Part shown: one piece after another, positions 21,146 through 44,249 of the stretch | Layout of the letters: each line of letters opens with the position of its first letter | Position numbering within the stretch: the stretch's first letter is position 1 | NCBI RefSeq assembly: GCF_001194135.2 | Contig: NC_068984.1 | Coordinates: 84,378,418 to 84,422,983 of the forward strand | Source: Octopus bimaculoides | Taxonomy: Eukaryota | Length of the DNA: 44,566 nucleotides | Reading direction: 5' to 3' | Position numbers and translations under genes: made by a program | Notes under the pieces: model-generated | What the model was told of the DNA's origin: nothing | Seen by the model: only the letters and a program-made list of their open reading frames with translations | Databases searched by the model: none

Positions 21146-21228
21146 TCACTTCTTCAGAACCAATTGGTATCTTGGTTTGGCGTAAGATTCACATTTGGTC
21201 AGTCGAAATTTTAACCTCTGCTTTGAAT
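21146..21228 (-). CDS. LRRC42: LRRC42 terminal coding exon (phase 1 start, ends in TGA)
   Basis: Acceptor tattttattcAG at 21230-21229; phase joins the previous exon to give F-Y-SKQRLKFRLTKCESYAKPRYQLVLKK*, with FYSK recalling vertebrate FYGK; AATAAA on the minus strand at 21113-21108. Confidence 0.6.
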
Positions 21229-21426
21229 CTGAATAAAATACAAAGAAACAGAAACATTTATAACCCTTCTTTATCATCATTATTTGTTTATTTATTATGC
21301 CAATAGGGAAACATTAGGTTTTTTTTATAAGAAAGAAAAATGAAATTGAATGACATTCATCCTTTTCAAGATCATTAACAAAGTGAGTTTTTTGTTCTTA
21401 TGTTAAAATATTCAGGAAAGAAGAGG

Positions 21427-21735
21427 CAGAGTCCATGACCTTTGCAACCACATAGTTTTGGTTCAAACTCATAGCATGACATCTTGAACTAATGTCTCCC
21501 ACAACAGCTCTGAACCAACCAAAGCCTTGTGGGTGGATCTGGTAGATAGGAAATGGATGAAGCATGTCGTGTGTGTGCGTTTGTTTGTTCCCCACCACAG
21601 CTTGACAACTGGTATTGGTGTCTTTATGTCTCCGTGCGACAAAAGAGACCGATAGAACTAGTGCCAGGCTTTTAAAGAAAATTAAGTACTGGGGTCAATC
21701 GGCTCGACTAAACTTCTTCAAGGCGATGCCTCCAA
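21427..21735 (+). mobile_element. SINE family A, degenerate
   Basis: CCAAAGCCTTGTGGGTGGATCTGGTAG...GAGACCGATAGAA homology to 7568-7975. Confidence 0.7.
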
Positions 21736-22413
21736 AATATATACACACAAACATGAACGCTATCATTCAAATTAAAAGTGTAAGAAGGGAGACAACTCCA
21801 ACTAAGGGAAATAATTCCAGATGAAGTAATTTATTCTGGAATGGGACATAAATTTGTACTGGAAAATATAATCAAAACCATCTCACAAAATAAAAAAAAA
21901 AAAAAGAAAAATCAAACCTATATGATATCTCGCAGATTTATAAAAATTACATAAATAAAAGCAGCACTCTCCACAAATGATTTACGTCACACTGTCTTAC
22001 ATAAGCAATGAGAATTCCCAAAAAGTCAGAGGACATGGACAACTAATCCAATCATGATGGAATCTCCCATTGAAGACAACAAATGAGTGTTCAGTTTTTT
22101 GCTGAGCCAACTGCACAAATGATCTGTTTATAAGTGATAAAATGTGCTGTACATTAGCTCATTCCTGCCATCAAATCAATGTTGCCTGAACAACTGCTTG
22201 GTGTACCACACATCAGGTGTCAAAGTGATTACAGAGCAACGTAATATCAAGAACACAATGCACCACTCAGTCCAAGAACTGAAACCATGATCTCGCAATT
22301 AGGAGTGCAACACCCAAACCACTAGGCCATGTGCCTTCACCTACTCAGTAACATTGAATAAATACTGACTTGGACAATTGATCCAATGGGTGGGTCTCTT
22401 ACATGGGTTAAAG

Positions 22414-22902
22414 CAGTGGTTCTCAACCAGGGGTCCATATCAAATTTTGGGGGATTCATGCAACAAAATAGTAAATTGGGGATCCACGATTGTATTTTAA
22501 GGGTCTATGAAAAATGTTTGCTTTAGATGTATGCATTGCAAGAAACAGCTAGGTTTCTTTAACATCTTACAGAGTTCAATCTCATCATCATTTAACGTCT
22601 GCTTTCCATGCTAGCATGGGTTGGACGATTTGACTGAGGACTGGTGAACCGGATGGCTACACCAGGTACCAATCGGATTTGGCAGAGTTTCTACAGCTGG
22701 ATGCCCTTCCTAACGCCAACCATTCCGAGAGTGTAGTGGGTGCTTTTATGTGCCACCGGCACGAAGATCTATGCATGAAAAAACAAAATTTTGAAAGTTT
22801 CAATAAAACTAGTTTTTAAACATCAAATGGCATGGGGCTCCACCAGAATAAAATAGTAATCAAATGGGTTCATAGATAAAAAAAAATGGTATAAAACTCC
22901 TG
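22414..22902. mobile_element. hAT-type MITE with nested family C insertion
   Basis: 5' CAGTGGTTCTCAACC; degenerate 3' TIR GGTATAAAACTCCTG (10/15 match); flanking 8-mers GGTTAAAG / GGTTAAAA. Confidence 0.7.
22582..22766 (-). mobile_element. Family C repeat nested in the hAT MITE
   Basis: Reverse complement of the 16293-16505 sequence, with (CAT)n tail at the left end. Confidence 0.8.
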
Positions 22903-23122
22903 GGTTAAAAAATCCTTGTTTCACTTGAATCTTCCATTTAGATTGGTTTGGCTGACCAAAATGTAATCAATAAGACAGTTCTTTGATGTATGTAGGAAGA
23001 CATTAACACTAATTAAGAACTGACAGGTCAGAATACATTTGCTCATTAAGAGTTGGCATGATGTTAAGTAATACAATTGAGTTACATTCCAAGCAAGAGG
23101 GTGGGGGTGGGGTTATACTTAC

Positions 23123-23306
23123 AGAAAGAATTTTCTCCCAACCGAGGTCGTTTGCTCTTGTTGTTATACCAAGTCAACCAAGTATTGATCACATTGCTTG
23201 CCCAGCCTTCAGTCTGTAAACGAAAACAGCTATCTAGTCCACCAGATACACCTTCCTCTGGAATACACACTCTCATTGACAGTAATTGCAGCTTGGTATC
23301 ATTTTT
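23123..23306 (-). CDS. LRRC42: LRRC42 coding exon 4 (184 nt)
   Basis: Acceptor ctattcacAG and donor GTAAGT; encodes ...CFRLQTEGWASNVINTW..., matching the LRRC42 C.TEGWA...V..W motif; phases 0/1 are consistent with neighbouring exons. Confidence 0.85.
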
Positions 23307-23559
23307 CTGTGAATAGAGTGAAACAAGGTGTGAGAGAGAATTCATCGTAATCATCATCGTTTTAATGTCCATTTTTCCATGGATCAGATGGATTTTTTTA
23401 TTGAGGTAGATTTTATATGGAAGAATACCTTCTTATCGCTAACCCTTACTAGTTTCTAAGCAAGGTAATATTTTCTCTTGGCCAGACATGTTTACACAGA
23501 ATATTAGAAATGATTCATATCTATTTACAACAATCATATGATGTCAAAACAAGGAGACA

Positions 23560-23747
23560 CACACACACATGTATGTTTGTGTGTGTGTGTGTGTGTGTAT
23601 ATATATATATATATATATATATATATATATATATATATATATATATATATATATATATATATATACATATATATATATACATATATATATATAATGTGTA
23701 TATATACATATGTATATAATGTGTGTGTGTGTGTGTGTGTGTGTGTG
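23560..23747. repeat. Long (GT)/(TA)n compound microsatellite
   Basis: Direct reading. Confidence 0.95.
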
Positions 23748-23850
23748 CAGGCATGGCTGTGTGGTTAGGAAGCTTGCTTCCTAGCCACACAGTTTTGGGT
23801 TCAGTCCCACTGCATTGCACCTTGAGCAAATGTCTTCTGCTATAGCTTTG
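23748..23850 (+). mobile_element. SINE family A, 5' fragment
   Basis: GGCATGGCTGTGTGGTTAGGAAGCTTGCTT...GGTTCAGTCCCACTG...CACCTTGAGCAAATGTCTTCT. Confidence 0.75.
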
Positions 23851-42309: not shown

Positions 42310-42560
42310 AGGTGCCAGAAAAAATGCACCCACTGCACTCTGGAAATAAGAAACGTTAGCACGCTTGGTGAAATGCTTAGCGGTAAAAAAACAGAAATTA
42401 GAAAAGGTATCCAACCATAGAAACTGTGCCAAAGCAGACATTGGATCTGGACACAATTCTCCAACTCACCAGATCCTATTGATTTGTCCAACTTATGCCA
42501 ATATGGAAGACAGATATTAAATGATGATGATAGTGGTGTTGATGATGATAATGATGGTGG
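42310..42560 (+). mobile_element. Family C repeat, degenerate
   Basis: AGAAAAGGTATCCAACCATAGAAACTGTGCC...GATATTAAATGATGATGAT. Confidence 0.55.
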
Positions 42561-42978
42561 CAGTGGTCTTATATGCGAGTCATGTGATAATTGAGTTAAT
42601 TGATTATATCAGTTATTTCACTATGTTGGTTCTGGACAGCATAGAAAGACCATCCAACTGATTGACAAAATTTCATTTTGCACTGCCTGTCTGACAGTGG
42701 ACCTTTATCACCTTTAGCCAGTCCCCAAAGGGTCTGTTTCTCTTGATAAGGAGGTTGGTGACAGGAAGTGGAATCTGAACTCAGAATACAAGGGACCAGA
42801 ACAAATACTGCATAGAAATGAACCTGGTTTTCTAACAGTTCCACCATTCCACTGCCCTAGGCTGGTACTTCATTGACCTTAAAAGGAAGAAGAGCAAAAT
42901 TAACCTCATCAGAATTTGAACTCAAGAAAGCACAAAACCAAAACAAATACCACAAGGTATTCATCCTGATACTCTTGG

Positions 42979-43165
42979 TGCAGACATAGCTGTGTTAAGT
43001 TTGCTTCACAACCACATGGTTTGGGGTTCAAGGTGCCATTGTGTGGTACCTTGAGTAAGTGCTTTCTACTATGATCCTGGATTGACCGAAGCCATGTGAG
43101 TAGATTTGGTAGATGGAAACTGAAAGAAGCATGTTGTGCATGTGTCTGTATACATATATATATAT
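42979..43165 (+). mobile_element. SINE family A, older degenerate copy
   Basis: CAACCACATGGTTTGGGGTTCA...GATTTGGTAGATGGAAACTGAAAGAAGC. Confidence 0.7.
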
Positions 43166-43170
43166 ACATA

Positions 43171-43624
43171 GGCGTAGGAGTGGCTGTGTGGTAAGTAGCT
43201 TGCTTACCAACCACATGGTTCTGGGTTCAGTCCCACTGCGTGGCACCTTGGGCAAGTGTCTTCTACTATAGCCTCGGACCGACCAAAGCCTTGTGAGTGG
43301 ATTTGGTAGACGGAAACTGAAAGAAGCCTGTCGTATATATGTATATCTATATATATGTATGTGTGTGTATATGTTTGTGTGTCTGTGCTTGTCCCCCCAA
43401 CATCGCTTGACAACCGATGCTGGTGTGCTTACGACCCCGTAACTTAGCAGTTCGGCAAANNNNNNNNNNGGTGTGCTTACGACCCCGTAACTTAGCAGTT
43501 CGGCAAAAAGAGACCGATAGAATAAGTACTGGGTTTACAAAGAATAAGTCCTGGGATCGATTTACTCGACTAAAGGCGGTGCTCCAGCATGGCCACAGTC
43601 AAATGACTGAAACAAGTAAAAGAG
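43171..43624 (+). mobile_element. SINE family A, young full-length copy (contains a 10-N gap with a 38-bp overlap duplication)
   Basis: Starts GGCGTAGGAGTGGCTGTGTGG and ends AACAAGTAAAAGAG; very close to 7568-7975. Confidence 0.9.
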
Positions 43625-43642
43625 TATATATATATATATATA

Positions 43643-43744
43643 TCATCATCATCATCGTTTAACGTCTGCTTTCCATGCTAGCATGGGTTGGACGATTTGA
43701 CTGAGGACTGGTGAAACCGGATGGCAACACCAGGCTCCAATCTA
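43643..43744 (-). mobile_element. Family C repeat, 3' fragment
   Basis: (CAT)n-CGTTTAACGTCTGCTTTCCATGCTAGCATGGGTTGG. Confidence 0.8.
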
Positions 43745-44174
43745 ATATATATATATATATATGGGGGGGGTGTATCCTCTTGTCTTGACATTGCATGATA
43801 GTTATAAGTGCCACTGTCATACAAACAGGGTCCATTCATTTCTAATATTCTGTACAAACATGTCTGGTCAAGGAAATATTACTTTACTCAGAAACAAGTG
43901 GGGGTTAGCAACAGTAAGGGCTTCTAGCCATAGAAAGTCTGATCCATACAAGCATGGAAAAGTAGACATTAAAACAATGATGAATACTTTAATATCTCTG
44001 CTAGTTTGCTGCATTCTTTTCTCCCAATTAAATAATAGATGCCCAATTATTTGTTTGTTTTTACTTGCTCATTGTTCTTCCTTCTAACATCCAACATAAA
44101 ACTTCACTAAACAACCATTTCAAAATATCTAATCTGATTGTAATAATGCTCTGTTTCTTTTCAAATTCATTCAG

Positions 44175-44249
44175 TGGCAGACTTGAGAATTGAATCAAGT
44201 ATGAAAAGTAGCCTAGACAATGATGACTGGAATTTTCTGGCTGAAAGCA
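44175..44249 (+). CDS. IFT25: IFT25/HSPB11 coding exon 3 (75 nt; gene continues beyond the window)
   Basis: Acceptor ttcattcAG; phase 1 joins exon 2 to give V-ADLRIESSMKSSLDNDDWNFLAES, like IFT25 VQTLKIEKSTSKEPVDFEQWIEK; donor GTTAAG (exact 3' boundary less certain). Confidence 0.72.

Follow-up and report, generated by a model that had tools for sequence, protein, structure and literature searches.

The divergent LRRC42-IFT25 gene pair of Octopus bimaculoides: ancient adjacency and a putative shared promoter

How old is the adjacency of LRRC42 and IFT25 (HSPB11) in the octopus genome, and is it tied to a shared promoter? We analysed a 44.6-kb stretch of the Octopus bimaculoides genome, hereafter called the window (assembly GCA_001194135.2, record CM046604.1, ~84.378-84.423 Mb). 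The window matches its part of that record exactly, and the N-gaps of the assembly locus around IFT25 (L001) recur in it, shifted by 23,942 bases. The window encodes LRRC42 on the minus strand and IFT25 on the plus strand, as divergent neighbours with zero annotated genes in between (the contig annotation used for gene ranges covers coding sequences, CDS, only). We are fairly confident that this locus is the O. bimaculoides copy of an ancient divergent LRRC42-IFT25 pair, for which a shared promoter architecture is the likeliest layout. The identities of the genes, their orientation, their adjacency and the conservation of the arrangement across phyla are established. A non-coding exon of LRRC42, the shared promoter and the constraint that would maintain the pair are inferred. 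A preliminary description of this DNA had claimed the divergent pair, and both gene models and annotation bear this out. The end points that it gave (21146 and 44249) and its start codon of IFT25 (33943) are all exact.

The linkage of the two genes has been described before. Yasuoka et al. (Mol Biol Evol 37:100, 2019; PMC6984359) reported that glis1/3, rfx3, ndc1, hspb11 and lrrc42 form a bilaterian-specific "ciliogenic cluster", linked within 100-600 kb, found it intact in octopus and proposed a link between LRRC42 and the cilium. The pair studied here consists of two of these genes, for which that report makes the same case of bilaterian linkage; hspb11 and lrrc42 are adjacent in the window, and glis1/3, rfx3 and ndc1 lie outside it. 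Hence, the central inference of the preliminary description is correct but already published, and so is the cilium hypothesis for LRRC42. What we add is limited to architectural detail. The text of PMC6984359 gives neither the head-to-head orientation nor an intergenic distance nor a shared promoter, and a literature search retrieved no paper pairing LRRC42 with "bidirectional promoter". We provide the orientation, the distances and a candidate shared promoter, and we identify Argonauta, Diadema, Priapulus and Danio as lineages that lost the pair.

Identity of the two genes

We built a five-exon model of LRRC42 by enumerating GT/AG boundaries. All exons are on the minus strand. Coding exon 1 (28102-28496, with the ATG at 28496) encodes the LRRC42-specific N-terminal domain (SLLSLCI.FVADNL..VESF..FP...) and matches its profile at E 1.7e-54. 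It is followed by ribonuclease-inhibitor-type leucine-rich repeats (LRR) in exon 2 (25755-25873, weak Pfam LRR_6) and exon 3 (25510-25598). This exon and exon 4 (23123-23306) were placed by tblastn and the spliced model. The last exon (21146-21228, stop codon at 21146-21148) was located by tblastn with the Octopus sinensis protein. The spliced model has 289 aa and matches XP_014772407.1 exactly. Two further O. bimaculoides LRRC42 accessions, XP_052823140.1 and XP_052823141.1, hold the identical protein sequence, which implies isoforms differing in their untranslated regions (UTRs) alone. In a database search, the product of the window was 98% identical to a protein of O. sinensis that is annotated as "leucine-rich repeat-containing protein 42" and likewise has 289 aa, and both NCBI and UniRef label the octopus protein LRRC42. 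A human LRRC42 query, 98% identical to the gibbon locus, matched three of the minus-strand exons by tblastn (best E 1e-14 at 28451-28113). All named hits to the profile of the N-terminal domain (alignment A1) are LRRC42 proteins, and Pfam returned only the sub-threshold LRR_6 for this protein.

The octopus protein begins at approximately residue 70 of the human one, with an in-frame stop upstream. Vertebrate LRRC42 has ~70 extra N-terminal and ~70 extra C-terminal residues; with 289 aa, the octopus protein falls short of the 428-aa vertebrate architecture and lacks its first ~70 residues. Invertebrate homologues range from 319 to 371 aa. The octopus protein belongs with these shorter versions of LRRC42 seen in invertebrates. 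Its AlphaFold model (pLDDT 63) is fairly confident at residues 10-200 and disordered in the C-terminal third; it predicts an LRR fold of the generic ribonuclease-inhibitor type, capped by helices at the N-terminus. We rejected structure as a guide to function, the Foldseek matches being generic LRR proteins alone (NLRP1, ribonuclease inhibitor, ZYG11B, FBXL17 and axonemal LRR proteins) with TM-scores of 0.25-0.39. Residues 225-276, encoded by the exons at 23306-23123 and 21228-21146, bear a weak likeness to the first half of the ETV6 PNT/SAM domain (W..V..WL.W..N...RP...N.F). The corresponding match in the PDB was discarded: its overall E of 2e-5 arises from three tandem copies in fusion constructs, and each copy scores E 10-19, so the resemblance is not significant.

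IFT25 is encoded on the plus strand by exon 1 (33943-34034; 92 nt from the ATG, encoding MLDLALSENGTKIGLATSSDEEYPPENIIDG, then a phase-2 intron), exon 2 (41335-41441; 107 nt, then a phase-1 intron) and exon 3 (44175-44249; 75 nt, then a phase-1 intron). Comparison of exon structures places exon 4 outside the window, at the equivalent of 46719-46864. The 91 residues encoded in the window match XP_014772409.1, annotated as "intraflagellar transport protein 25 homolog", with 100% identity. The complete O. bimaculoides protein has 139 aa and matches the Pfam family F5_F8_type_C with 32.9 bits (cut-off 28.2). It thus shows the single F5/8 type C (galactose-binding-like) domain and the length of ~140 aa that characterise the family. 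A further mark of the family is an IFT25-IFT27 heterodimer within IFT-B. Its PDB matches are three only: human HSPB11 (1TVG, E 1.6e-32) and the IFT25 chains 2YC2, from Chlamydomonas, and 8RUY. The preliminary description had suggested a comparison of intron positions and phases. We ran it for IFT25 and found the same positions and phases from sponge to primate: exons of 92, 107 and 69-75 nt and intron phases 2, 1 and 1 are common to gibbon, Danio, amphioxus, sea urchin, oyster, mussel, Priapulus and sponge. Intron 1 of the octopus gene also contains, at 39431-39547 on the plus strand, a decayed copy of exon 2 and its flanking splice regions, 73% identical to 41335-41441. In-frame stops and indels identify it as a dead duplicated exon, not an alternative one.

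Gene order across animals

Starting from IFT25 orthologues of many phyla, we took the DNA up to 10 kb to either side of each gene and looked for LRRC42 in it, using both LRRC42 proteins and the A1 profile. LRRC42 is head-to-head with IFT25 at the O. bimaculoides locus, the same as in the window, and in the gibbon (GCA_006542625.1, used as a stand-in for human), where its product has 428 aa. The same arrangement is found in the amphioxus Branchiostoma lanceolatum (in two assemblies; three collinear exon fragments match the profile at E 1.6e-10, 1e-6 and 4e-5), in the oyster Ostrea edulis and in the mussel Mytilus trossulus. The CDS-to-CDS gaps of the invertebrate pairs outside octopus, those of both bivalves among them, are 1.5-2.7 kb. 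In O. vulgaris, the LRRC42 and IFT25 proteins have consecutive accessions. We did not find LRRC42 within 10 kb of IFT25 in the octopod Argonauta hians (no upstream neighbour annotated), the sea urchin Diadema setosum, Priapulus caudatus (a cobW-domain gene upstream), Danio aesculapii (SMN upstream) and the sponge Dysidea avara (a USP9X-like gene upstream). The D. aesculapii IFT25 gene (L013 10001-10767) is very compact, with five exons in 767 bp; SMN adjoins it, illustrating the break-up of the pair in teleosts.

At human 1p32.3, HSPB11 and LRRC42 presumably form a divergent pair, and the preliminary description had claimed such neighbours; we see them in the gibbon. The human arrangement is also given in Fig. 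2 of PMC6984359. The description further suggested that the pair could predate the protostome-deuterostome split and have survived in Octopus, and had proposed gene order in intermediate lineages as a check. The arrangement seen in gibbon, amphioxus and two bivalves bears out this age, and amphioxus, mussel and oyster are the intermediate lineages in which the pair is present. Independent origins of an identical divergent adjacency in molluscs, a cephalochordate and a primate are not credible. Hence, it is well supported that the LRRC42-IFT25 pair is ancestral to bilaterians and was lost repeatedly.

The adjacency could instead have arisen by chance or convergence, or be an artefact of assembly or annotation. 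The absence of the pair in five of the ten sampled species would fit this explanation, as would the presence of three assembly gaps within the region. However, the same divergent immediate neighbours occur in four distant lineages and in the annotations of three Octopus species, and an independent octopod contig is collinear with the window across 31081-35464. Two of the gaps prove continuity. They are runs of 10 N with identical flanks, one at 29144-29153 in the putative 5'UTR intron of LRRC42 (28932-29143 equals 29154-29365; 212 bp, 100% identical) and one at 43460-43469 in intron 2 of IFT25 (43422-43459 equals 43470-43507; 38 identical bp). Such flanks indicate unmerged contig overlaps, and thus a sequence that is continuous and slightly over-long. 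The third gap, 807 N at 37626-38432 in intron 1 of IFT25, has flanks without overlap and is a real stretch of unknown sequence. All three are intronic and touch no exon or reading frame. We therefore regard chance and artefact as effectively refuted. Elsewhere in the window, a 134-N gap at 1479-1612 looks like an unmerged overlap too: 1393-1478 equals 1789-1874, with the left copy abutting the gap and the right copy ~180 bp beyond it.

A putative shared promoter

The start codons of LRRC42 (28496) and IFT25 (33943) are 5,447 bp apart, or ~5,225 bp once the 222-bp duplication in the assembly is subtracted. The preliminary description had given an interval of at most 376 bp. Its limit on the IFT25 side is exact, but its limit on the LRRC42 side is the end of a putative non-coding exon 1 (33567-33627, minus strand), and the interval measured from ATG to ATG is far longer. 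The last base of this exon would be 33567, at a donor CAG/GTGAGT (33569-33561, minus strand), and its 5' end is estimated from the position of a TATA box.

Several features point to such an exon. The donor is a perfect MAGGTRAGT; there are five such sites in the window for 1.6 expected, and ~0.007 are expected on the minus strand of the 376-bp interval. A TATA-box-like sequence, TATATAAAA, lies on the same strand at 33647-33655, ~80 nt upstream of the donor. Both elements are conserved in a 4.4-kb contig of a related octopod (L011) that is collinear with 31081-35464 at ~80% identity. Identity to this contig peaks at 0.96 at 33581-33680, over a background of ~0.8, which equals the peak at IFT25 exon 1. 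At the other end of the presumed first intron, 83 nt before the LRRC42 ATG, a long pyrimidine tract followed by AG (ttttttcttttttcattgtag, ending at ~28580) makes a strong acceptor. Exactly at this acceptor, identity to L010, a contig from an octopod and the second used here, increases from 0.65-0.85 to 0.90-0.93. UTR-only isoforms, as implied by the three LRRC42 accessions with one protein, also fit such an exon. The sequence from there to the ATG (28497-28579, minus strand) bears an upstream open reading frame (uORF), typical of internal 5'UTR, and on the strength of its sequence and its identity to L010 we treat it as the putative 5'UTR part of the ATG exon. The two contigs, which carry octopod LRRC42/IFT25 fragments, served for phylogenetic footprinting; we ruled them out as transcripts, both being genomic and collinear with the window. 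Non-coding RNA was likewise rejected as the source of the conserved block, with zero Rfam or tRNA matches.

The interval from the putative donor to the IFT25 ATG (33568-33942) is our candidate for a bidirectional promoter together with both 5'UTRs. It is free of intra-window repeats and aligns throughout with L011. The layout would resemble that of the mammalian pair. In the gibbon, LRRC42 adjoins IFT25 on the upstream side, with the opposite orientation, and its ATG exon lies ~5 kb from the single CpG island between the genes, much as we propose for the octopus, where the ATG exon would also be several kb from the promoter region. The two differ in composition: in mammals, the DNA between the genes is a CpG island of 1.4 kb; in the octopus, it is AT-rich (GC ~0.31 in the interval) and contains a TATA box.

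Under this layout, LRRC42 would be transcribed from a short non-coding exon at ~33627-33567 with a TATA-containing core promoter. A distance of ~300 bp would separate this exon from the start codon of IFT25, and splicing across a first intron of ~5 kb would join it to the ATG exon (28579-28102), so that both genes would share one promoter region of ~0.3-0.4 kb. A breakpoint within such overlapping 5' regulatory DNA would harm one of the genes. We propose that regulatory DNA that cannot be split without damage explains the persistence of the pair in a heavily rearranged cephalopod genome.

Some points weigh against this account. LRRC42 exon 1 is putative and was read from genomic sequence alone, and the conserved block at 33581-33680 could be an upstream element of IFT25. 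Conservation of the interval was undetectable in the comparison with Argonauta, a more distant octopod. This footprinting proved uninformative, as IFT25 exons 1 and 3 alone align and the upstream sequence is a TA microsatellite. Moreover, the 10 kb to either side of IFT25 do not contain LRRC42 in Argonauta, the sea urchin, Priapulus, the Danio species and the sponge. The pair being broken in several lineages, any constraint is not absolute.

In a different layout, the genes would have separate promoters. LRRC42 would then start near its ATG exon (~28.6 kb), ~5 kb from IFT25; the block at 33.57-33.68 kb would be an enhancer or promoter element of IFT25; and the adjacency would be kept by simple inertia or because both genes lie within a wider regulatory block, the glis1/3-rfx3-ndc1 neighbourhood. 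The 5,447 bp from ATG to ATG is indeed the sole directly measured distance, and the sequence upstream of the LRRC42 ATG (28497-28600) is likewise well conserved in L010. The span of the published cluster (100-600 kb) also suggests linkage at the level of the block, not of the promoter. Several observations speak against separate promoters: the perfect donor in the direction of LRRC42 within the conserved block, so rarely expected by chance; the conserved TATA box on the same strand; the strong acceptor and uORF-bearing sequence just upstream of the LRRC42 ATG; and the similar gibbon layout. We consider separate promoters unlikely. The compact shared promoter that the preliminary description envisaged is favoured, indirectly, by donor, TATA box, conservation peak and acceptor, but a distance of less than 1 kb between start sites stays putative. 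Overall, such a promoter is likely in octopus, on these genomic signals, and we present it as putative.

Pairs are usually called bidirectional when their transcription start sites are less than 1 kb apart. Bidirectional promoters and conserved microsyntenic pairs of metazoans form a general class (for example, Irimia et al., Genome Res, 2012; Trinklein et al., Genome Res, 2004). LRRC42 and IFT25 resemble such pairs in being unrelated genes that stayed adjacent and divergent for more than 500 million years, plausibly through overlapping 5' regulatory DNA. The octopus genes are adjacent and divergent with no intervening gene, and the spacing of their start sites is putative.

The preliminary description had also contrasted a repeat-free interval with introns filled with transposons. 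Self-comparison of the window revealed many microsatellites and, besides them, short interspersed repeats of three families (150-230 bp, 5-10 copies each, 70-94% identity between copies). By this measure of intra-window similarity, repeats and microsatellites cover 16-36% of the introns, in partial agreement with the description. However, the domain search (136 open reading frames of at least 62 aa across the window) found no transposon protein domain inside 21146-44249, and the stretch free of intra-window repeats extends over ~3 kb (31184-34220), not just 376 bp. The contrast is therefore weaker than claimed. Example copies of one family are at 7563-7790, 21445-21570, 23742-24102, 24895-25049, 42991-43386 and 44330-44504; of another at 6303-6517, 30106-30225 and 40561-41301; and of a further one at 16315-16549, 22582-22766, 27033-27257, 31032-31181 and 43624-43746. 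Several copies also match multiple sites of the Argonauta locus, so these are probably octopod elements resembling short interspersed nuclear elements. The domain matches among the 136 frames were one RT_RNaseH_2 (18054-18260) and the LRR of LRRC42, and none else. The former belongs to a remnant of a long-terminal-repeat retrotransposon pol gene at ~17273-18260 on the minus strand (RT_RNaseH_2 E 1.9e-10; weak integrase core at 17273-17491, E 0.003), which coincides with the GC peak of the window (0.49) and lies downstream of the LRRC42 3' end. A 156-aa frame at 2042-2509 (minus strand) looks, by eye, like the N-terminal helix-turn-helix of a mariner/Tc1-type transposase (weak Pfam HTH, E 0.002).

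Possible co-regulation and the cilium

If the two genes share a promoter, is this for the sake of the cilium? The preliminary description and Yasuoka et al. share one reading of the linkage: selection for joint expression in ciliated cells, for example through RFX at the shared interval, with LRRC42 having an unrecognised cilium-related role. IFT25 is a component of the IFT-B complex according to the names of its PDB matches, and rfx3 belongs to the published cluster (PMC6984359). In three other species, X-box-like (RFX-site-like) palindromes precede the start codon of IFT25 by 40-420 bp: GTTACTTGGACAAC in the related octopod (L011 2743-2756; one mismatch, reached by 5 of 300 shuffles), GTAACCGTAGGCAAC in Argonauta (L003 9587-9601; 17 of 300) and GTTGCTATGCAAC in D. 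aesculapii (L013 9920-9932; 16 of 300). The sites of these three species are suggestive, and would fit IFT genes being RFX targets. Drosophila lacks IFT25, and this would accord with co-loss; two of the five cluster genes were lost in that fly (PMC6984359).

Other observations speak against this reading. The palindrome of the window itself, GTTACTTGTACAAC (33906-33919, plus strand, 24 nt upstream of the IFT25 ATG), has two mismatches to GTTRCY-N2-RGYAAC, and 70 of 300 shuffles reach its score. With an extra mismatch relative to L011 and no significance, we ruled it out as a cilium-promoter signature supporting the claim. The same shuffle test found no significant X-box-like site in the intervals of gibbon, amphioxus, oyster and mussel. 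LRRC42 is reported to be nuclear, and in human tumours it is co-expressed with splicing and mRNA-processing genes, not with cilium genes. Its generic LRR fold prediction is uninformative. The pair is also dispensable in several ciliated lineages.

Selected co-regulation thus appears doubtful to us, and functional co-regulation of LRRC42 and IFT25 by a cilium programme is speculative. A stronger version seems less probable still: that the ~110-bp block with its divergent TATA box and splice donor has been a bidirectional promoter since the bilaterian ancestor, kept for co-expression of the two genes, with LRRC42 associated with cilia or intraflagellar transport.

The pair illustrates that some gene adjacencies outlast the extensive reshuffling of coleoid genomes. 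Coupling at the level of the promoter, if true, would exceed the published block-level linkage in that point alone, and, once proven, would be a solid argument for examining a ciliary role of LRRC42, a gene that is poorly understood.

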